In this document: piece by piece, positions 30,726 to 52,740 of the stretch
Numbering within the stretch: the stretch's first letter is position 1
Layout: the number at the start of each line of letters is the position of its first letter
Sequence record: MW248466.1
DNA length: 64,000 nt
Reading direction: 5' to 3' (one strand)
Notes under the pieces: generated by a model
What the model saw: only the letters and a program-made list of their open reading frames with translations
Told to the model about the DNA's origin: nothing
Database searches by the model: none
Translations under genes and position numbers: made by a program

Positions 30726-31893
30726 TTAGATCATATCTTTTACTTTACGTTTTAATTCTATTAAAGCTTTGTTAGTAAATAACATCAAGTAGATATCTGT
30801 AGTCATACGAGATACAATACTTAATGGAGAGAATATAGCTTCGATTTCTTCATCAGGTCTATATTCTGCATAAGGAGATTCATTAGGTGGAGTAACGTCA
30901 GCAATAACTGTTTTACATGCACCGTAGAAACTAATCTTATCACCGATACTCATATCATCTTCATACTCTGTAAAGATTTCAATAAGTACTCCGTCTACTT
31001 TCTCACCTTTAATTTTTTCACTATTAATTTTCTCTACAGCTGGAATATCTACATCTAATCCAGGTAATGTAGATTTATTATCTTTAACTGCATTTTTGTA
31101 TTCTTTATATTTGCTCTTAGATTTATTAATATAACCATTAACCAATTTAGCTAATGTAGGAGACATATTTTCAATATCATCATTATAGTAGATATTTACT
31201 TTTTTAATTTCTCCAGTATATTTAGATCTAACAGCTCTATTAGAAATATCTTGTATTTCTTGTTCAAATTCAGAACCGATTTTATCTAATAAAGAACCAA
31301 TACCTTCATCATCAAATGAATTCTCAAATATCATTAATGGATCTCCTGTACGTACATTTTGACCTTCTTTAACAATATATTGAATATTCGTACTAGAAGC
31401 TAAGTTGACTGTTTTCTTCATAGTAACTTTAGTTGACATCGCTTCAGACATACTATTAGAAATAATAGAACTATCCTCATACGTACCATAGCTTGAAGCT
31501 ACAGCAACTTTAGATAATTTACCAGCAGCAAATTGAATATCATTATTGCTACCAGAACCTGCAAAGTAATTATCATTTTTAGCTAATACTTGCCCTTTAT
31601 TAAATTTATTACCTACTTCAAATTGTGGAGTAAGTTTATTATTTTGATAGAAACCGCCATTAGAGTTCTTAGCAAGTTTCTCAGATATATCAATAACATC
31701 TTTATCTCCATTGATATATTCAACAGTCATTAAACCAGTCTTTTCATTAACAGATAAAACCTTGCCATCTTCTTTAGCTTTAAAAGCAAAAGTATCAGAT
31801 ATTTGATAAGCTAAAGCTTTATCTACACCAGAACCAACTAATGGACGGTCATTTGTTTTAGTAGCGATTAAATGCTTAGCCTGAGTTCCTGTC
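30726..31893 (-). CDS. rpoB: RNAP beta-like subunit, exon 2
   Basis: Frame is open 54 codons upstream of the tracked ATG (TGTQAKHLIATK...). Contains YEDS, GDKISFYGACKTVI and SRM beta motifs. Confidence 0.9.
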
Positions 31894-33195
31894 CGATATC
31901 TTCAATAGAGGTCGTAAATCTCTACCAGTTCTCTTATGAACTTCTTTAAGTTTTCCTTAAAGTCTAGACTATATCTTCACCCTATATTTTCATTATAGGG
32001 GATCACTATTTCGATTTAAGGGATTCTCACCCACTCCATTAACTTGAGCCCTACTCCTGTTGGTATATTTCAATACCCTATGGGATAGTCGTTGAGCTTT
32101 TTCCTAGACAATTTTCGATTTTTTCTTTTAATTTTCCTTCTTTTTGATCTTTATAATTTACTCTTATCAGATCTATTTTTTCATGATTTTCAAAATAGTT
32201 ATCTTTTATTTGGTCATTCTCTTTTAAAGTTTCAAATTTTTCTTTACCATTTTCATATCTAAAAGGTATGAAGTGCTGTTCACCATCAAATTCTATACAA
32301 AGATTATATTCTTCTAAAAAGAAATCAACTCTTAAATAATTTCCTTTTATACTTAAAAGATTATCGAATTTCTTTTCTTTTTCATAAGGTATTTTCATAT
32401 TATCCAGATATTCAGATATTTCTTTAGTACCTTTTGAATTATTGATATCACTACAATAAGGACAGCGATGACCTGATGAATAAAAACTTTCCCAATTCAT
32501 CTTGAATTCTCTTCCACATTCTTCATGTAAAATATCCATTTTAGTTCTACTATTGGAATATGAATTTGAAATTAATTCGTAATCAAATTTTTCTATATAA
32601 TCTTTTACTTCTTTAAGGTTTTTCTTTTTATTAGGTGCACAATGAGGACATCCATAACCCTGTTGAAGGTTACTGTATGTGGATTTGAATTCATTTTCAC
32701 ATAATGAATGGTATATTGATAATTTCTTTTTACTATTTTCATATTCACTCTTTAAAATATAAATATCCTCACCATGTAAGACATTTAATTTTTCTTGTAC
32801 AACTTCATTATCAACCACTCTTCCTGCACATTTAGGACACTTATAACCTTTAATAAAATTTGTTGGTAATACATCGTATTCATAATTACATTTTGAATGT
32901 TTTAGTCTTAATTTATTTTTATATAATTCAAAATCTTTTATGAAGATATACTCCTCATAATGTTTTAATCTTTCTTTACATTTTTTATGATATTCTTCTC
33001 TTTTATTCAATTATTTCCAACCTTTCTTGCGAAAAGCTTGTCTAGGAACTTAGTTGCTGATTACCCAATCTTAATGATTTTTAAGCATATCACGCTTACT
33101 GTTACCAGTTACGTTGTAGCTCATTAAGCTCTAAGGATTTTCCAGCAATTAAATGATTTTATACATATATATTACTATATAAGGGGACAAAATTT
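31894..33195 (-). mobile_element. group I self-splicing intron (1302 nt)
   Basis: P1 exon GGGAU pairs with IGS GUCCC (U-G at the splice site). P AAUUGCUGGAAA 33139-50, Q AAUCAGCAAC 33053-62, R CUCAACGACUA 32086-96, S AAGAUAUAGUC 31967-77, terminal G at 31894. Splicing restores the frame. Confidence 0.93.
32078..33010 (-). CDS. intron-encoded homing endonuclease (zinc-ribbon repeats + DUF559/Vsr-like PD-(D/E)XK domain)
   Basis: Three H..C.....F...G..CP.C repeats; C-terminal LRVDFFLEEYNLCIEFDGEQHF; TTG start. Confidence 0.85.
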   Translation of the reverse strand: MNKREEYHKKCKERLKHYEEYIFIKDFELYKNKLRLKHSKCNYEYDVLPTNFIKGYKCPKCAGRVVDNEVVQEKLNVLHGEDIYILKSEYENSKKKLSIYHSLCENEFKSTYSNLQQGYGCPHCAPNKKKNLKEVKDYIEKFDYELISNSYSNSRTKMDILHEECGREFKMNWESFYSSGHRCPYCSDINNSKGTKEISEYLDNMKIPYEKEKKFDNLLSIKGNYLRVDFFLEEYNLCIEFDGEQHFIPFRYENGKEKFETLKENDQIKDNYFENHEKIDLIRVNYKDQKEGKLKEKIENCLGKSSTTIP

Positions 33196-36100
33196 ATCCC
33201 AATTCTTGGTGAATCTGCATGTCTACTAGTATATGGGTTTAATAATTCTAATGGAGTATATAAAGCTGTATCACTTACATCTTTTTTACTACCATCAGTA
33301 TAACCACGAGTAGATTTAATTTGTGTATCATATGAAAGTTGTCTAACTATCCCTACCTTATTAGAGTCAGGAGTGGATATTCCTAATATACCTTGCATAC
33401 TTTCATCGTAAGAACGAATATCAGGTTCATATGATTGTTCAGAGTTACGTCCAGCAGGACCTTTAAATGTAACAGAAGTCATCTTATCTATTTCTAAGTT
33501 AGGGTTCAAATCAGATACTTCATCTACTGTAGGTTGTTCCATAATAGTTTTAATTAATTGATCTTGTTTAACTGAAATATTCTTAGGATTTTTATTATTA
33601 TAAGAATCTGAATATTCTTTGTAAGCATTAGCCATCATTTTATATAATAATGCGTTGATCTGTTCTGGACCACGTACACGATAAATTCCCATATCATTAT
33701 GATCTCTAGCAGATACATCTTCTAACATCGTATTAGCTAATAGTAACAATTCAACCATATTATCAGGAAGTTTTAAATCTCTTAATACTTCTTTAGTAAT
33801 AGGGTCCATTGCTAAATCCATAGTATTTTTAATACCTTTACCAACATTACGACTGTAGAATTTATCATTGAAATATTCTAAGTAAGGTGTTTCAGTTTCA
33901 AAATCACTGAAGTTGTATTGTGATGTAGGTAATACAGTTAATCCAGACATTAATAAATCAAATCTTAATTTATCAGTAGAATATATTAAATAACCATCTT
34001 GGAATTTAATCTTATTCTTTTTATCATGAATACTAATTCTTTCATTTTCAGTAGTAAATTTATAATCAACTTCATAAAGATCAAGAATATTAGTTAAACC
34101 TTTATAGAAACCTAATAATAGAATTGTAGGTACTAATTTATTAGTAATTTTAACACGTGAAAATGCCATAGTTTTACTAGCTTGTATATTCTTACTAAAT
34201 TTCTTATCAACGACTCCAAAGTCAACTTCATTGTCTAATTTATCAATAATATAGTCAAATATATTCATTTCCATTGACTTAATATTAGATTTACTACATT
34301 CATACATAACAGATTCTGTTTTGTCTGCTAATATTAATTTAGATTTATTAATATTATAACCGATAGGGAAATATTTATCTTGATCATAATCAATCTTAGA
34401 TAAACTAGCACTATCAGAAATCATTCCTAATAAACTTCTTTGGTTAAATATAAGTACATTAGTATCATCTTGGAAATTTAGTATATTTCTAGATAAACTA
34501 TTATAAATAACTGATGTTACATATTTATTATTGATTAAAGAAGCATTACCCTTTTTAACAGATAATTTAGATTTATTTTCAATATAATCTATAACTTGAT
34601 CGTCTTCAATAACTTTCTTAATCCATTCAGTTTCAGCATTTTCTTTATAACCAAATTTTTCTATAATGAATTTATTATAGTTAGTTGTAATCCAAACAGT
34701 ATCAGGTTTATATTTAACGATTGGCCACATCATTAACTGTTTAGTTAATACTTTTTTACCACCATTAAGTTTCATGTATTTACCATCAATAACTTTGGGA
34801 ACATCAAATTTAACATTATGAGTTAAACCATCTGGACTTCTAAATTGAACTTTAACTGTATTCTTTAATGATTGACTATCTGAATTATCTTCAATATTCA
34901 TTTTATTAATAAATACTGGAATATCTTCATTGTCATTAAAGCTCTTCATTATATCAATAAAGTCTTTATTAAATGTTTTTTGCATATAAGAAATATCAAA
35001 ATCATTAGAAGCAATATTGTTAATAGTCTCTTCATTGATATTATTAATATTTTCATTAATTTCTCTATCAATTAATTTATCTTCAGAAAAACTAAAATCT
35101 TCTAAATCATTAAGGTATTCATCTTGTTTCTTAGATAAAGCTAATATCTTTTTAGTATTTTTAAGAGCTTCATCTCCGATACTAGATTTATTTTTAATAT
35201 TTCTCTTGATTGATTTAAATGAATCATTCTTATCCAATACATCTGAATATAAAGTTTCAGTATCAATATCAATTAAATCTTTATTATCATTTAATTCTTT
35301 TTCAATTATCATAGCTATATTATATTCATCATCAACATCCATTTCAGTATTGTCTAATGATCTAATATAACTTATTGTAGAATCTATTTTATTAGATATT
35401 TTTTCTAATTGTTCATCATTTTCATATTCAACTTCATCATTCTGAGATTCAACAGGATCAATTGTACTTACATTATCAAATGCTTTCTTTTTAATTACTC
35501 CATCTACAGCTTCAGTATTGTCATCATCTTCAACTTTACTAATTTCATCAGTATCTAATGCTTGTGTATTAGTGTCAATCATTCTTCTTAATCTTTGTCT
35601 TAATCTCATATTAAGTTTATTATAATCTTTATAATCAAATTTAAACATTATTCCATTATCTAATGAGACAAATAATAAATTAACATTTTGATTTTCACCG
35701 TGAGGTAATTCCTCTTGATTTTTAATCATCATAAATAAACTTGACATGAAATCTTTTGTATTAGGTCTAATAGCTTGTTGAGAAGGTTTATTATAACCAT
35801 CAACATTAATTACATAAAGTAAATTATTATAATCTTCTGTATTATTTAAAGAGTTAAAAGTTGATTTAATTGAATTTAATACAGTATTAAAGTTTTTAGT
35901 CATTAATGATTTATCTTCTAAATCAATAAATTTAGTTGAATCAACAATATAGTTTCTACTTTTAAATAATTTCTCATTTCTTTCAACTCTATACTGTTTG
36001 TAAGATCTAGATTTAATTTCTTTTTGATAATCTGTTATATTCGTTAATAATCTAGTTCTTCTATTTTGAGTTCTATACAATCTTGGAGTATAGATATTCT

Positions 36101-36281
36101 TGAAATTCTGATGATATAATAATCCACTATTTAAGAAATCAGTAAATGAATTTTCTTTAAAACCTTTATAAATAACTAATTGGTCTTTTTTCTTATCTTT
36201 GATTTCTTCATCAATAGCTTTAATTTTATATCCAGATATTGAATAGAATTTAAGATTTTTTAATCTATTAAGATATTTCAA
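33196..36281 (-). CDS. rpoB: RNAP beta-like subunit, exon 1 (spliced product ~1417 aa; probably virion RNAP)
   Basis: TFKGPAG, GILGISTPDSNKVGIVRQL, RHADSPRIG|M (fork-loop and HDDANR-equivalent motifs). The last 12 codons of the tracked ORF are intron read-through. Confidence 0.9.
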
Positions 36282-38839: not shown

Positions 38840-40786
38840 ATGATAGGTTCAAAGATTAGAAAATCATTAAATGAAAAATTTGGGTATCATTATAAGTTTT
38901 TATTAGAAGACTTTAAGAAAGATTATGATTTAAATAATGATACAATTATGGTAACTAAAGAAGCTAGTGATATTACAAAAGAATATAAAATAAAATCATT
39001 AAAGTATACTAAAGACATTGAAAAATTAGATAAAGACTTTAAGAAAGAGGAAGAAGAATTAAATATTAGAAAATCTAGAATTTTTAATTTAGATGAATTA
39101 GGTTTAGATGAAGACCTTAGAAATATCTGTAAGTATATAGATAGTACTACTAAATTAAAAGTAAAAGTTAGAGAGTATAAAAAAGAAAGTAAAGAAAATA
39201 TTGAGTTCTTTTACAAGAATTTTGCTAATTATACTTATAATAGTGTAATATATGATATGAGTAATTTTAAACCATCAACAATTAGATCTAATCAGAAAGT
39301 TATATGCAGAAAACATGGACCTTTCTTTACTACTCCAGTAGATTTCTTTATAAAGAAAAAAGGATGTCCAGTGTGTGAAAAAGAAACAGAGGAAGAAAAG
39401 AAAGACACTAGTTGGAAGGATGAATTCATAGAAAATAACAATAAAAAAATATATCAAGAAGTAAAGGAAGAAAAAGAAAATAAAAAATCTAAAAAAGAAA
39501 AGGTAGATGTGAAAAAAGAAAATAAAAAACTTTTAGATGAAATATTAAATCCACCTGAATTAGGATATTACAGAGAACCGGATAAGATACCTAATAATGA
39601 AAAAGAAAATGAGAAATTCTTAAAGAATATTAAAGCTATAGATAACGATAAAGTTGAAGAATCTAAAGAAGTTCAAAAACCAAAAGAAATTGTTAAACCT
39701 AAATTAAATAAAAAGTCAGTTGATCAAATAATAGGAGACGATAATACTAATTTAGGTAGAAAGATTAAATATATAAATAAAAATATCTACACGGAAAATG
39801 AAAGACAAGATTTCTATAAAAAATTAACTGATCGTAAACATGGTAAAAATAAATATAAGATTGACAAATTCAGACCTAAGACTATCAAAGAAAAACAAGA
39901 AGTAATTTGTCTTAAGCATGGTCCTTTTAAAGTAACAGCTGAAGAATTATTAATTAAAGGCAAACAGTGTCCTAAATGTTCTTCTACTAGCACTTCGATA
40001 ACAGAAACTTTTGTAAGGGAGTACATTCAAAGTTTAGATTTTGAAGTTAATAATTATGAGATAGAAGATTTAATCAGACCTTATGGTGTTGATATAGTTA
40101 TAGAAAATTTAAAATTAGCTATTGAAGTTCAAGGTATTAAATATCATTCATCTGAAACAAGATCAGAATCTTCAAATAAATACCATCAATTAAGAAAATT
40201 AAAAATGTTAGAAAATAAAGGTTATCATTTATTGAATATATATGATGATGAAATCCCTAATAAGAATAAAGGAATTGGCTGGGATAAATTTGGTAGATTT
40301 TTATCTGAATTAATGATGTTTGATAAAAGATTTGATATTGAAGAAATGGATACAAATTCAATAAAGATAGATACAATTAGTTATTACAAATTCAGAGAAT
40401 TCTTTGAAAATTCTAGACAAAATTTTGTTACTGGAGATACAGAGTATAAAGGTGTAGTTTATAAGAATAAATTAATCTCAGTGTTCTCATATAATAAAGA
40501 AACAAGAGAATGTCATAACTATCATACTATGACAAATAATAAATTTGATTTGGAATTAATTAAAAGAAAATACAAAGATTTAAAATTTGTAGTTAAAAAA
40601 GATTCTTATGTAGCGTATAAAATGAAAAGCTATGAAATGTTACCAATAGCAGAAACGGAACCTGACTTCTGTAACTTTTCAAAGACCAATGGAAATAGAA
40701 AAAATAACTATATAAGACAAAAAAGAAAGGATGAAAATGATAAAAACAAAGTATATAACTGTGGAAATATAATTTTTGTATTTTAA
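38840..40786 (+). CDS. free-standing homing-endonuclease-like protein (2 x C..HG.F....CP.C zinc ribbons + Vsr/DUF559-like nuclease)
   Basis: VICRKHGPF...KGCPVC, VICLKHGPF...QCPKC, VDIVIENLKLAIEVQGIKYHS. Confidence 0.75.
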   Translation: MIGSKIRKSLNEKFGYHYKFLLEDFKKDYDLNNDTIMVTKEASDITKEYKIKSLKYTKDIEKLDKDFKKEEEELNIRKSRIFNLDELGLDEDLRNICKYIDSTTKLKVKVREYKKESKENIEFFYKNFANYTYNSVIYDMSNFKPSTIRSNQKVICRKHGPFFTTPVDFFIKKKGCPVCEKETEEEKKDTSWKDEFIENNNKKIYQEVKEEKENKKSKKEKVDVKKENKKLLDEILNPPELGYYREPDKIPNNEKENEKFLKNIKAIDNDKVEESKEVQKPKEIVKPKLNKKSVDQIIGDDNTNLGRKIKYINKNIYTENERQDFYKKLTDRKHGKNKYKIDKFRPKTIKEKQEVICLKHGPFKVTAEELLIKGKQCPKCSSTSTSITETFVREYIQSLDFEVNNYEIEDLIRPYGVDIVIENLKLAIEVQGIKYHSSETRSESSNKYHQLRKLKMLENKGYHLLNIYDDEIPNKNKGIGWDKFGRFLSELMMFDKRFDIEEMDTNSIKIDTISYYKFREFFENSRQNFVTGDTEYKGVVYKNKLISVFSYNKETRECHNYHTMTNNKFDLELIKRKYKDLKFVVKKDSYVAYKMKSYEMLPIAETEPDFCNFSKTNGNRKNNYIRQKRKDENDKNKVYNCGNIIFVF

Positions 40787-48401: not shown

Positions 48402-48803
48402 ATGGCTCAAAATATTTATAACCATCAGCATATGTTAGAAGATATGGAAGCTATGGGTCAAACAATTCAGAATTTAATTATAATGAAAAAAGGAACTTAT
48501 CCTAATACTCCAAATTTAGGAGTAGGAATAGAGGATTATTTATTTGAAATACTAGATAACGAAACTATATCTGATATTACTAGTAATATTAATAATCAGA
48601 TAAATCAATATATAGTATCTTCTTCTGTTAATATAGATGTTAAAGTAATACAATTAAAAAATAGTAATGCAAATTTAAATAGTTTAAAAATTGATGTTAC
48701 GCTATCAGATACAATTGATATTTCTAATATACAAAGATTTTCTTATGTATTTGCAGCTAATATGTTAACTAGGAAAATGATAACTAAACTTGTTTTAAGT
48801 TAA
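48402..48803 (+). CDS. baseplate wedge protein (T4 gp25-like)
   Basis: QNLIIMKKGTYPNTPNLGVGIEDYLFE matches the gp25/GPW pattern. Confidence 0.8.
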   Translation: MAQNIYNHQHMLEDMEAMGQTIQNLIIMKKGTYPNTPNLGVGIEDYLFEILDNETISDITSNINNQINQYIVSSSVNIDVKVIQLKNSNANLNSLKIDVTLSDTIDISNIQRFSYVFAANMLTRKMITKLVLS

Positions 48804-48844: not shown

Positions 48845-50350
48845 ATGGTGAAAAAAGCAGATAACAATGAACTTAATGATTTTATGTCTGAAGAAGAATT
48901 AAATGAAGTTAGTCAAGGTTCTTCTAACAATGATGGGAAACAGGAACAAAAACAAAGTAATCAAAAACAACAAAATAATCAAGGTAATAAAAAGAAAAAT
49001 AACAATCGTAGAAGAAACAACAATAATAAACAGAATCAACAGAATAAGAAACAAAATCAAAATAACAAATCAGCAATTCCAACTCAAAGAAATAAAGACA
49101 ATCAAACTATGATGAGTGCTAGTGTTGATAATGATAATCAACAAGAACAAACTAAAACGGATCATATCAATTTAGAAGGTCCTCAACCAGGCGAAGGTTT
49201 TGTTGATTATGAAAACTTAACTTCACATGGATTTGATGAAGGAAAATCAAATGAAGATACTTCTAGTATGACATTATCTGATTTTGAAGAACAACAAGAA
49301 CAAAAAGCTAAAAAAGACTTTGAAAATCAAAAAGCTATTAGTGAAATTGAAAGCATTAGTAGTGATGAAAGAGCTAGTCTATTAAATAATATTAATGTAG
49401 ATTTAGACAATATTGAAATTATTTCTGATATCGATTATGATATTGATAAAGAAAATACTAATTTCGTATTAAATAGTAAAGCAACTCATCAAGTTGTATT
49501 ACCGCAATCAGCTTATATTGCTCATATGGAAAGTTTACGTAACCAAGAGATTTTATCTATTGCTGAATCTATTGATGATGATTACAACGCAATGTTAAAA
49601 CGTTACCAATTATACTTCCATAAAATGAACACGAATTCATTAGGAATTAATAATTTCCAAGATTTCGCTAGATTGACTTCTGTATATGATGTTAGTACTG
49701 TTGAATACGGATTATACAATATTTCATTCCCTGGTGAAACTAAATTTGACATTAGATGTGGTAGCTGTAAAGCTGAATTAAAAGATGTTAAAGTTTCTAA
49801 TGATCAATTAATGTCATTCAAAGATGAAGATGCTTTCGAACATGTTACTAAAAATGTTAAGAATATTACTAGCGTTGATGAAAATAAAGAACACTCATTA
49901 ATCTATACGGAACAACGTATTGCTTTAAAAGATTCTAAAATTATCTTTGAAATTGTAACTCCTACTGTTGAAAAACACTTAAGAGTTTTAGGTAGTATCC
50001 ATACGGACGGTTTAACTGAAGATGAATCAGAAAGATTTAAACAAAATGCTACAGCTTTAATGCATGTTAAAAATGTTTATATCCCTGACTTAAAAACACT
50101 TAAAGAAGGACAAAAACCTAAATTCCGTAAATTAGGTGAAGATAATATGAAAGATAAAATGCAAATTATTGAAAATCTTTCTATTCGTGATGGACATCAA
50201 TTAACTGATGCTATTTATGATCGTGTTAATAAACATGCCATTGAATACGCTATTAAAGGTGCAAGCTGTCCTAATTGTGGAGAAGATTTAGGTAAGATTG
50301 ATATTGATATGAGCGAAATGCTTTTTCGGGAAGCGCTGCATTTGGTTTAG
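48845..50350 (+). CDS. baseplate hub / tail assembly chaperone (T4 gp26-like) with Q/N-rich N-terminus
   Basis: FPGETKFDIRCGSC, CPNCGE and D.SEMLF end; directly after the gp25-like gene. Confidence 0.6.
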   Translation: MVKKADNNELNDFMSEEELNEVSQGSSNNDGKQEQKQSNQKQQNNQGNKKKNNNRRRNNNNKQNQQNKKQNQNNKSAIPTQRNKDNQTMMSASVDNDNQQEQTKTDHINLEGPQPGEGFVDYENLTSHGFDEGKSNEDTSSMTLSDFEEQQEQKAKKDFENQKAISEIESISSDERASLLNNINVDLDNIEIISDIDYDIDKENTNFVLNSKATHQVVLPQSAYIAHMESLRNQEILSIAESIDDDYNAMLKRYQLYFHKMNTNSLGINNFQDFARLTSVYDVSTVEYGLYNISFPGETKFDIRCGSCKAELKDVKVSNDQLMSFKDEDAFEHVTKNVKNITSVDENKEHSLIYTEQRIALKDSKIIFEIVTPTVEKHLRVLGSIHTDGLTEDESERFKQNATALMHVKNVYIPDLKTLKEGQKPKFRKLGEDNMKDKMQIIENLSIRDGHQLTDAIYDRVNKHAIEYAIKGASCPNCGEDLGKIDIDMSEMLFREALHLV

Positions 50351-50613
50351 TAACAACGACTAACTCCAAGCAATATAGAAAAAAGGTCTTTGATGATGCA
50401 GCGTATATAGCATATTTGCTTGATTTATTTGAAGGACGTTTATCTTTTAATGAAATTCTTAATATGGAATTAAATATATTAAATTCTATGGTTAAAGCTA
50501 AAGAAAAAGAAATGAAGAATAAACGTATGCAACAACAAAAATTAGAATCTGCTCAAAAAAGAGATTTTAATAATGGAATGCCTAAAGTAGAACTACCAAG
50601 ACATTTAAATTAA
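50323..50613 (+). CDS. -1 frameshift extension of 48845..50350 (gp51-like domain); predicted fusion 589 aa
   Basis: The -1 frame is open from 50308. Slippery CTT TTT C; no RBS at tracked TTG 50416; stem GCGCTGCAT/ATGCAGCGT 6 nt downstream. Confidence 0.7.
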   Translation, partial: FSGSAAFGLVTTTNSKQYRKKVFDDAAYIAYLLDLFEGRLSFNEILNMELNILNSMVKAKEKEMKNKRMQQQKLESAQKRDFNNGMPKVELPRHLN

Positions 50614-50645: not shown

Positions 50646-50939
50646 TTGGTTACTAATACTAAAGATAGTCAGAAAATCCTTCATATTTATGATTCTCTTG
50701 TTGAAGATGATGATAATATTTTATCATCTCTATGTCATTCTAATAAAGGTTTAGTATTTGTAAATCTTTTATATGATGTAGATTATAAAATTAAAGAAGG
50801 ATTTTCTAAAAACTATAATGAATTTGATTACATTATTTTGGAAACAGAAGACAAAGAAAAATTAAAAGAAAAAGTTTCATATATAAAAAATTTAAAATTT
50901 GAAGACAACAAGAATACTATAAGAATTTCAATTGTGTAA
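50646..50939 (+). CDS. hypothetical protein
   Basis: 97 aa, AAGGAG RBS, TTG start. Confidence 0.7.
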   Translation: MVTNTKDSQKILHIYDSLVEDDDNILSSLCHSNKGLVFVNLLYDVDYKIKEGFSKNYNEFDYIILETEDKEKLKEKVSYIKNLKFEDNKNTIRISIV

Positions 50940-50956: not shown

Positions 50957-52699
50957 ATGTTAGATAAGAATAAAGAAAAGAAAAAATTAATTTCAAATAT
51001 TGTAGACGAAGATTCATATAAAGATATAGCGGAATTAACTATTGATACTATTTCAAATACGTTAATGAAGTCATTAGGTTATTTTGGTTCTACAACTATT
51101 TTTGATGACGGTATTAGCAGATATGTAACTAAAGACGGTTATAATATCTTAAAAAATATTAGATTTCAAGATACAATCGCTACAGCTATTTTGAATTTCA
51201 TTAAAGAAGTATCGTTATCATTAGTTAAGTCTGTTGGAGATGGATCAACTTCATCAGTAATTAACTCACAAGCTATGTTTAAAGAGATTAACAAAAGATT
51301 AAAAGAAAAAGATGATTTAGGTGGTTATTCTCGTAAAGAAATTTCAGATTCATTAAATAATATGAAAGAATTAATTTCTAAAGAGTTAACTTCAAAATCT
51401 ACTAAAATTGATCAAGATAATTTCCATAAATTAAAAAATATCGCTACAGTATCTAATAATAATGATGAAAAATTAGGAGAAATGGTTTATGAAATTTTCT
51501 CTAAAATTGGTAATAAAGGTTTTATATTCCCTGAAGTTTCTGATAATGAAGAAGACCATTATTCATTAACTAGAGGTATTGAAACACCGCATGCATTATT
51601 AGATAATAAATTAATTAATAATAAAGATGATCATTCAGTTGATTTTAGTAAACCTTATGTAGTTGTTGTTAATGATAAACTAACTGAAGAGGATATTGTA
51701 TGGACATCAAATATTATTTCTAAAGTTAAACCTTTCTCAGGACAAGGATTAATATTCTTTGCTCCAGCTTTTTCTAAAGAATTTAAAGACTACATTAAAA
51801 ATAATTTGCATGCTAATAGAAATAATGGTTCATTACAAGCAGTTGAAACTGACTTTGAATTAGCTATCGGTTCTCATTATCATGATCCAGAAAAATTAGA
51901 AGATTTAGCTATATATACAGGCGGATCTATTATTGATAAAACTATGGAAAAAGAAGATTTCTATAAGCAAGTTGAATCTATTGTAGAACTTCCTGAAAAT
52001 GATCCAGAGTGGTTATTATTTAATGAAAATATGATTGGTAGAGCTGAAAGAATTACTATTGATAATTTTAAAACACAAATTGTTAATGGTTATGGTAATG
52101 GCACTCAAAAACTTAAAGATAGAATTTCAGAAATTAATAATGAGATAACTTATTATACTGACATGAATTCAGATCAAGCTATTACAGCTATTACTGATTT
52201 ACAAAAACGAGCAAATTCTTTAAATAACGCTATTGCTAAATTATACGTTGGTGGTTCTTCTCAAGCAGAAAAAACTTCTAGACTATACTTAGTAGAGGAT
52301 TCAGTACATGCTTCTAAATCTGCTTTAGAACATGGTTATGTATCTGGAGGTAACTTATCAGTAAATAAAGTTATTAAAAATATTAATAGAGAAGTTTTAA
52401 GTGATTTAGATAATCTAACATTAGATTTAATAGATATATCTTCAAGAGAAGTTTACCATAAAGTATTAGAAAACTTTAATAGATTTAGTTCAGGAGAAAT
52501 TGAATCCATTACTCAAACTTGTATCGATAAAGATGCTATATTGAATATTAAAAATAATGAATATGAAGATGATGTTAATACAGATATTATCAACTCAGTA
52601 GAAACAGATATTAAAATATTAGAAACAACTATTAGTATTATAGGATTGATTTCACTAAGTAACCAATTCTTAACTAATTCAGTCATTATCCCACAATAA
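50957..52699 (+). CDS. groEL: GroEL-like phage chaperonin
   Basis: VTKDGYNIL, VGDGSTSS, LYVGGSSQAE, EDSVHASKSALEHGYVSGG. Confidence 0.92.
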   Translation: MLDKNKEKKKLISNIVDEDSYKDIAELTIDTISNTLMKSLGYFGSTTIFDDGISRYVTKDGYNILKNIRFQDTIATAILNFIKEVSLSLVKSVGDGSTSSVINSQAMFKEINKRLKEKDDLGGYSRKEISDSLNNMKELISKELTSKSTKIDQDNFHKLKNIATVSNNNDEKLGEMVYEIFSKIGNKGFIFPEVSDNEEDHYSLTRGIETPHALLDNKLINNKDDHSVDFSKPYVVVVNDKLTEEDIVWTSNIISKVKPFSGQGLIFFAPAFSKEFKDYIKNNLHANRNNGSLQAVETDFELAIGSHYHDPEKLEDLAIYTGGSIIDKTMEKEDFYKQVESIVELPENDPEWLLFNENMIGRAERITIDNFKTQIVNGYGNGTQKLKDRISEINNEITYYTDMNSDQAITAITDLQKRANSLNNAIAKLYVGGSSQAEKTSRLYLVEDSVHASKSALEHGYVSGGNLSVNKVIKNINREVLSDLDNLTLDLIDISSREVYHKVLENFNRFSSGEIESITQTCIDKDAILNIKNNEYEDDVNTDIINSVETDIKILETTISIIGLISLSNQFLTNSVIIPQ

Positions 52700-52708
52700 A
52701 AACTTATT

Positions 52709-52740
52709 GCCGAAACCATTTGAACATTAATGGTTTCGGC
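52709..52740 (+). terminator. intrinsic terminator
   Basis: 12-bp stem GCCGAAACCATT/AATGGTTTCGGC followed by TTATTTTT. Confidence 0.85.

Follow-up and report, generated by a model that had tools for sequence, protein, structure and literature searches.

Programmed frameshifting in phage assembly genes is, to our knowledge, found mainly in tail assembly chaperones, such as the G/GT pair of phage lambda, and in a few capsid and tail-tube genes. In gene 10A/10B of phage T7, a -1 shift near the end of the structural gene, at a U-rich site with a Phe codon, gives a minor, C-terminally extended form of the capsid protein without a classical pseudoknot nearby. We know of no frameshift in the hub assembly genes 26 and 51 of phage T4, which follow gene 25 in the order 25-26-51; gene 26 yields a second product by internal initiation, unlike a frameshift. 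The T4 proteins gp26 and gp51 have been listed among the hub assembly chaperones, with gp51 absent from the particle (PMC3004832), and the product of gene 51 has been named 'Baseplate hub assembly protein' (PMC12115623). Here we analyse a window of 64,000 nucleotides (the whole stretch of DNA studied), in which the region of interest matches Staphylococcus phage MarsHill at 100% identity (MW248466.1; subtracting 124000 from a record position gives the window position); MarsHill is a lytic jumbo phage of 266 kb from the AR9/PBS1 group. Two of its coding sequences (CDSs), CPT_MarsHill_176 (48845..50350) and CPT_MarsHill_177 (50416..50613), both labelled 'hypothetical protein' in GenBank, very probably constitute one gene that gives two proteins through a programmed -1 ribosomal frameshift. 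An earlier interpretation made from the letters of the window (hereafter, the sequence-only reading) had proposed such a shift at a T-run, with a C-terminally extended second product, and the frame layout together with the conservation of the run and the coding pattern supports that proposal.

The two frames are arranged as follows (window positions):

48845..50350, + strand: 0-frame open reading frame (ORF) CPT_MarsHill_176, 501 amino acids, the short product, defined by the ORF list and translation and closed by TAG at 50348-50350
50308..50613, + strand: -1-frame open stretch of 101 codons plus stop, which begins right after a TGA and includes CPT_MarsHill_177 (TTG 50416..50613)
50308..50347, + strand: zone of 40 nucleotides with both frames open, in which the shift must fall
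50321..50326, + strand: C followed by five T, the Leu-Phe codons CTT TTT and the proposed shift site; the next 0-frame codon is CGG
50326..50610, + strand: putative C-terminal extension of the long product, the last 95 codons of the -1 frame, from translation

The ORF list and the translations bear out the layout given in the sequence-only reading: the 0 frame ends ...ATG CTT TTT CGG ... TAG after 501 codons, and the -1 frame runs open to 50613, so that 494 codons through Phe and 95 codons in the -1 frame add up to a fusion of 589 amino acids. The openness of the -1 frame far exceeds chance. Stop codons occur in the -1 frame of the window's long ORFs at a frequency of 0.21 per codon, and the chance of an open -1 frame is ~8e-4 (P) for 30 codons and ~4e-11 for 101 codons.

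Which frame is read was assessed by counting synonymous and non-synonymous codon changes per frame in an ungapped alignment of MarsHill and Machias (given as synonymous/non-synonymous):

50200-50307, upstream of the overlap: 0 frame 12/7; -1 frame 1/20; +1 frame 3/20
50308-50347, overlap: 0 frame 3/3; -1 frame 1/6; +1 frame 1/6
50351-50415, from the 0-frame stop to the TTG: 0 frame 1/15; -1 frame 7/7; +1 frame 1/15

Judged by these substitutions, upstream of the overlap no frame but the 0 frame has a coding pattern, and between the 0-frame stop and the TTG no frame but the -1 frame has one; purifying selection acts on both frames. The seven-residue tail that only the 0 frame encodes is near-identical between the two clades (REALHLV vs KEALHLV, with 3 synonymous changes) and completes the last helix in the model of the upstream domain described below. 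Such constraint on the tail suggests two functional products, with the short form mattering too.

The layout was compared at the DNA level among MarsHill, SA1, DC4, S6, LY01, Machias, AH12, AR9, Internexus, BpSp and phiR1-37, to which two IMG/VR contigs and seven metagenomic contigs were added, for a total of 15 distinct lineages with 25-99% protein identity. The metagenomic contigs were drawn from eight chosen for diversity; the GC-rich contig L021 stops at the stop codon and was left out. All 15 lineages carry the downstream domain of ~95 codons in the -1 frame, never in the +1 or 0 frame, with an overlap of 28-73 nucleotides with the 0-frame end. In the isolate genomes, the -1 frame extends back across the 0-frame stop by 31-73 nucleotides, and it is always the same Leu-Phe pair that carries the T-run. 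The -1 frame is open across the T-run in every lineage, which sums to ~134 codons over the 15 lineages at a stop frequency of ~0.2 per codon. Linker and 0-frame tail are of variable length, indicating that insertions and deletions occurred while the frame relation stayed. The conservation of slip site and overlap in relatives, named in the sequence-only reading as a check on the proposed shift, is thus found in 15/15 lineages, and the genomes and contigs that show this layout, each sequenced independently, number more than 20 and come from different laboratories and platforms.

Homologues of the upstream protein with 25-41% identity are encoded by PBS1, AR9, Internexus, Goe21, BpSp, Listeria phage LPJP1 and Yersinia phage phiR1-37. 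When the -1 piece was used as a tblastn query, protein conservation started exactly at the T-run (76.6% identity in the Machias clade), and a hidden Markov model built from the -1 pieces matched solely the -1 frame in 7 metagenomic lineages, with E-values from 2.5e-27 to 6.6e-6. A phmmer search with the upstream protein against 1.84 billion representatives recovered 439 family members at E <= 1e-3. The family alignment made from these comprises 137 sequences, namely the window's domain and 136 of the matches listed; its slip-site column holds Phe in 133/137 sequences, preceded by Leu in 122, Ile in 6 and Val in 6. The 0-frame ORF ends at a median of 9 residues past this Phe column, and at no more than 25 residues past it in 136/137 representatives. 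In LPJP1 (MZ422438.1), where the gene is unannotated, the T-run is present and the linear record breaks just past it, the record start lying inside the gene; the downstream part was not located at the other end of the record. None of the GenBank records of relatives examined carries a frameshift annotation, and a literature search found no mention of a frameshift in this gene or in the AR9/PBS1-like phage group.

The slip-site pair is retained in all 15 lineages as CTT, ATT or GTT followed by TTT or TTC, with a T-run of 4 to 8. Most lineages have T5, the Machias clade has only 4 T and then C, and the longest runs are those of BpSp (8), L023 (7), and L014 and L020 (6). CTT makes up 13% of the Leu codons in MarsHill and is found in 3 of its 60 Leu-Phe pairs; yet the codon before Phe always ends in TT, which argues for a constraint at the nucleotide level, beyond that on the protein. 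The sequence U-UUY at the Phe codon is common to 15/15 lineages and LPJP1, so that re-pairing of tRNA-Phe one base back would be possible throughout. The preceding codon, being CTT, ATT or GTT after a varying base, would leave its own tRNA unable to re-pair in the -1 frame. Finally, Phe is followed in the 0 frame by CGG in the MarsHill clade and in L025; this codon is used 0.11 times per 1000 codons and, being extremely rare, would make for a slow A site favouring a P-site slip, whereas the other lineages have an ordinary codon at this position. A phage-encoded tRNA-Phe, to which the DC4 paper had pointed, was considered as a helper of the slip and rejected: the window and MarsHill carry no tRNA, and the tRNAs of relatives differ or are pseudo-tRNAs.

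In the scheme that follows, we infer the ribosomal nature of the shift, its exact codon and efficiency, the standing of the short form as the major product and the roles of both products. Most ribosomes would stay in the 0 frame up to the TAG at 50348-50350 and produce the 501-residue short form as the major one. Some would slip back by one base with tRNA-Phe on the UUU of C-UUUUU (50321-50326), the tRNA re-pairing on the overlapping UUU (from UUC in the Machias clade), and in the MarsHill clade the rare CGG in the A site may aid the slip. The shifted ribosomes would then continue in the -1 frame to 50613 and produce the 589-residue form, in which the extension replaces the last seven residues of the short form. 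Both forms probably serve baseplate hub assembly, and the shift would set their ratio.

The sequence-only reading had also assigned a stimulatory role to an RNA structure beyond the run:

50333-41 with 50396-404, + strand: proposed long-range stem of 9 pairs, 8 Watson-Crick and 1 G-U
50347-51 with 50359-63, + strand: inner hairpin of 5 pairs, enclosed by the long-range stem

The pairing itself stands, as both the long-range stem and the inner hairpin appear in the minimum-free-energy fold. The stimulatory role is not supported, and the stem was rejected as a conserved element. The MarsHill fold is no better than those of shuffled sequences (z -1.4 over 94 nucleotides and -1.0 over 100, with 18/200 shuffles folding equally well or better). 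The two arms are invariant within the MarsHill/SA1 clade, which is therefore uninformative on the stem, and in the Machias clade 4/9 stem pairs are broken without compensation, the changes being synonymous in the -1 frame in the 3' arm and in the 0 frame in the 5' arm. The inner hairpin has already lost one of its pairs in DC4, S6 and LY01. Folds of 45, 70 and 100 nucleotides in eight lineages revealed no common downstream structure (z from +1.1 to -3.9); long-range stems with z from -2.3 to -3.9 are predicted in some lineages (AR9, BpSp and L014), and none in others. The claim that the local sequence is unusually GC-rich held up: the 20 nucleotides past the T-run have 60% G+C in a window of 25.3%, a level reached by 0.14% of 20-nucleotide windows, and G+C over the 24 nucleotides past the run is above the local level in 15/15 lineages. 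The same bases encode both the Gly/Ser/Ala-rich linker of the -1 frame and the 0-frame tail, so that double coding could explain the composition and a structure is not needed for it.

Several observations weigh against a programmed ribosomal shift at the run. Inside the overlap, the substitutions favour the 0 frame over the -1 frame, so it is only through the conserved run that the exact shift codon within 50308-50347 can be placed. Nor does the site form a canonical tandem-slippage heptamer, the Phe tRNA being the only one able to re-pair. No stimulatory structure is conserved across the lineages, no SD-like (Shine-Dalgarno-like) element lies upstream and Rfam gave no match at E <= 1, and with none of these at hand the efficiency of the shift is not arguable from sequence. 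In addition, the virion proteome of DC4, the sole one found for a close relative and a shallow one with 15 proteins, contains neither part of the protein.

The same change of frame would result if the shift were made in the transcript, by a non-canonical multisubunit phage RNA polymerase that, on a uracil-containing DNA template, adds one U within the run. That the conserved element is a homopolymer run, long in BpSp, L023, L014 and L020, and that no conserved RNA stimulator was found are both compatible with slippage of this kind. RNA polymerases, however, are known to slip on runs much longer than four or five T, and with T5 in most lineages and 4 T followed by C in the Machias clade, a long run is not obviously selected. 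We regard transcriptional slippage as improbable, although it is the best placed of the alternatives to the ribosomal shift.

Somewhat less probable still is a pair of separate genes, in which the small protein would start at TTG 50416 or a non-canonical codon, or through re-initiation once ribosomes have reached the 0-frame stop. Two CDSs are indeed annotated throughout GenBank (in all ten Staphylococcus phage records as well as in AR9, BpSp and phiR1-37), the annotators of phiR1-37 placed a ribosome-binding site (RBS) before g242, and L022 and L023 have start-like codons with moderate SD scores ahead of LLDLFxG(K/R), a motif of the extension common to Staphylococcus, Bacillus and Yersinia phages. 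At TTG 50416 itself, however, an SD is missing, as the sequence-only reading had stated: the duplex energy with the anti-SD is -0.1 kcal/mol, compared with -7.9 to -12.0 kcal/mol for 4/5 of the neighbouring starts scored (only -2.0 for the gp25-like gene) and -7.9 kcal/mol, a good RBS, for gene 176. Likewise, GenBank gives RBS features for genes 176, 178, 179 and 180 and none for gene 177. Several lineages (SA1, BpSp, L017, L018 and L019) have no ATG, GTG or TTG at all between the run and the motif, and the TTG candidates of other lineages, where present, fall inside the motif and lack an SD. The annotated downstream starts vary among genomes, with some cutting the motif, and those of Machias, SA1 and LY01 lie past it. 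Moreover, the -1 frame shows coding upstream of 50416, and independent genes would not need a downstream frame that is always -1 and open back over the T-run. The absence of independent initiation at 50416, as implied by a shift, is supported by the missing SD, by the lineages lacking a start codon and by the coding in the -1 frame ahead of the TTG.

The weakest explanation, a sequencing mistake or a decaying gene once in a single frame, can draw on the proneness of homopolymer runs to sequencing errors and on the one-ORF reading in contig P0040 of a draft Bacillus subtilis assembly (PBS1-like phage), but that contig has two single-base indels relative to AR9 and its upstream part is uncalled as a gene, while the layout recurs in the >20 independent genomes and contigs and in 136/137 family representatives with both frames under purifying selection, so that a frame error is refuted as far as sequence comparison allows and its likelihood is close to nil.

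The one-ORF contig itself (QANM01000070.1, lineage L027, from the B. subtilis draft GCA_003052465.1) is 1.9 kb long and 96.8% identical to AR9 over the locus; probably PBS1-like phage DNA was present in the culture and its sequence is of draft quality. In-frame fused homologues were considered as proof of the long product and set aside, with P0040 as the single case, of draft quality and with a C-terminal part that matched nothing else; it is evidence neither way.

The protein encoded upstream of the programmed shift consists of two parts:

48845..49351, + strand: N-terminal low-complexity region rich in Gln, Asn, Lys and Glu, the first ~170 residues, gapped or unalignable beyond the Staphylococcus phages
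49352..50347, + strand: conserved domain of ~330 residues (residues 170-501), delimited by alignment, AlphaFold2 model and fold search

Even between one Staphylococcus phage and another, the N-terminal region is very different in both length and sequence, and with the Bacillus and Yersinia phages no alignment of it is possible. The conserved domain has four Cys that are invariant in the alignment (C136, C139, C306 and C309), forming two CxxC pairs ~170 residues apart, and they probably make up a zinc site. The only PHROG match of the gene 176 protein is family 18873, of unknown function (E = 6e-80), and Pfam gave no match at E <= 0.1. The AlphaFold2 model of the domain, based on the 137 aligned sequences, has a predicted local distance difference test (pLDDT) score of 94.4 and a predicted template modelling (pTM) score of 0.89. 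Among solved structures, no sequence match was found for the domain, and the fold search of the PDB returned nothing below E = 0.3. When Foldseek was run against the predicted viral structures of BFVD, 58 matches were obtained at E <= 1e-3, many of them of 216-285 residues, with names such as 'Baseplate hub assembly protein, bacteriophage T4-like', 'Baseplate hub subunit' and 'Baseplate hub assembly chaperone'. Further BFVD matches outside the family are proteins of unknown function from phiKZ-like phages (Erwinia Special G and phiEaH2, Ralstonia RSF1 and RP12, Klebsiella Eowyn), at E-values from 1e-14 to 1e-9 with a query TM-score (TMq) of ~0.6, so that the predicted fold is common to the other large group of jumbo phages; they differ in that the identity is just 11-14% and the proteins have 500-690 residues. 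The Pfam family PF12322 (T4_baseplate) is matched below threshold in 7/37 relatives (best E = 4.3e-4). On the strength of the predicted model, the upstream domain appears akin to T4-like hub assembly proteins by remote fold, without being a member of the Pfam family.

In the extension, a linker rich in Gly, Ser and Ala and a basic patch accompany a conserved hairpin of two helices; its model consists of two long helices that form a helical hairpin (pLDDT 75). No relatives outside the family were found for it, the sequence search of solved structures giving only noise (E ~0.4) and the fold search nothing below E = 3.9. The suggestion that the shift joins gp26- and gp51-like domains is therefore not supported: the upstream domain alone matches whole hub proteins (216-285 residues), and the hairpin of the extension matches nothing.

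The gene lies in a short operon on the + strand, in which a gp25-like gene is followed by 176, 177, a 97-residue ORF, a GroEL-like chaperonin gene and a terminator. Besides the frameshift gene, its elements are the following:

48402..48803, + strand: CPT_MarsHill_175, gp25-like baseplate wedge / sheath-initiator gene, the first of the operon; 'baseplate protein' in the record
50646..50939, + strand: conserved ORF of 97 residues, function unknown, with a strong RBS
50957..52699, + strand: GroEL-like chaperonin, in the same gene order in AR9, BpSp, phiR1-37 and metagenomic contigs
52709..52740, 3' of GroEL: terminator, a perfect 12-pair hairpin with T-runs on both strands

The hairpin at 52709..52740 looks like a bidirectional terminator that ends the operon, and no terminator lies between the 0-frame part and the -1 part. 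The product of the gp25-like gene matches PHROG 261 and 43, 'baseplate wedge subunit' (E = 4e-14 and 2e-6), with a weak match to Pfam GPW_gp25, and its adjacency to the frameshift gene is retained in all relatives, including AR9, BpSp, phiR1-37 and the metagenomic contigs. The fold likeness and the position after the gp25-like gene support a role of the upstream domain in baseplate hub assembly, and the baseplate function put forward in the sequence-only reading gains from both. In the phiR1-37 record, g241 and g242 do not bear the 'phage structural protein' note given to g237, g239, g240 and g244. T4-like synteny reached through gp25 matches was tried and abandoned: the gene after gp25 in CP220 is unrelated (hhalign probability 0.1), and the next gene in S-RSM4 is gp6.

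Some other features of the window deserve mention. SD pairing at the ATG of the gp25-like gene (window 48402) is nearly nil, at -2.0 kcal/mol vs -8 to -12 for its neighbours, and its real start or mode of initiation may differ from the annotated one. The position of the 97-residue ORF, between the frameshift gene and that of the phage GroEL, is constant in AR9 (g229), BpSp, the Staphylococcus phages and the metagenomic contigs, and phiR1-37 is seemingly without the ORF. On the minus strand (window 30726-36281), the annotated CDS of the virion RNA polymerase beta subunit is a join of two pieces, and another ORF, of 310 residues (window 32078-33010), lies between them; this has the look of an essential gene interrupted by an intron or other intervening element. 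Finally, for a hypothetical protein of 648 residues (window 38840-40786), the annotators recorded an HHpred result of 99.7% to the trypanosome mitochondrial small-subunit ribosomal protein mS74, an unusual resemblance for a protein encoded by a phage.

If the programmed ribosomal shift is correct, the annotation of two 'hypothetical proteins' would be corrected in every sequenced member of the group. The analysis locates the site in the hub-assembly gene of the AR9/PBS1/phiR1-37 group and of many metagenomic relatives, and points to hub assembly as the first clue to function for a family that numbers at least 439 sequence clusters and has a confident predicted fold and no solved relative. It would also provide recoding research with a natural case in which an efficient-looking -1 shift takes place at a U-run, with re-pairing of a single tRNA and no obvious stimulator. 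A relative dependent on two isoforms in a fixed ratio would, moreover, be a new handle on T4 hub assembly and on the roles of gp26 and gp51.

More speculatively, and with reservations that outweigh our confidence, the shift could be an ancient, family-wide property of hub assembly, a second 'universal' morphogenetic frameshift beside G/GT, spread over hundreds of lineages with a minimal U-run and no common stimulator. The ratio of short to long form would then be fixed, the hairpin would tether the long form to a partner (the hub or the phage chaperonin), and the arrangement may extend to the phiKZ-like and T4-like homologues, which are detected by fold comparison only.

The locus can be compared with the systems described above. 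Like T4 gp51 and gp26 (PF12322), the MarsHill protein has the hub-assembly type of domain fold (Foldseek E = 6e-8 to 1e-5, probability 1.00, target TM-score 0.5-0.68) and is encoded directly after a gp25-like gene, whereas it is about twice as long, with an extra low-complexity N-terminus and insertions, and differs from PF12322 in that MarsHill has no Pfam match at E <= 0.1 and its relatives remain under the gathering score. It resembles lambda G/GT in that an assembly factor, morphogenetic and probably absent from the virion, comes in two forms with a common N-terminus, in that a -1 shift close to the end of the first ORF yields the long form, and in that the arrangement is conserved far beyond sequence similarity. 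The 'G/GT-type' assignment of the sequence-only reading nevertheless goes too far. The MarsHill gene does not lie between tail tube and tape measure, neither of which is annotated within the 38 kb surveyed, but between the gp25-like gene and the 97-residue ORF and GroEL; it has no Pfam or PHROG match to tail assembly chaperone families, its fold matches being hub assembly proteins; its site permits re-pairing of one tRNA only; and its extension is short, at 95 residues. The likeness to G/GT is thus limited to the logic of two products. The T7 10A/10B pair, with its U-rich site and Phe codon, differs in the protein, an unrelated capsid protein, and in the phage group, which is likewise unrelated. 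Set beside these systems, the mechanism proposed for MarsHill would be of a known kind, whereas the gene family and the breadth of its conservation appear to be new.

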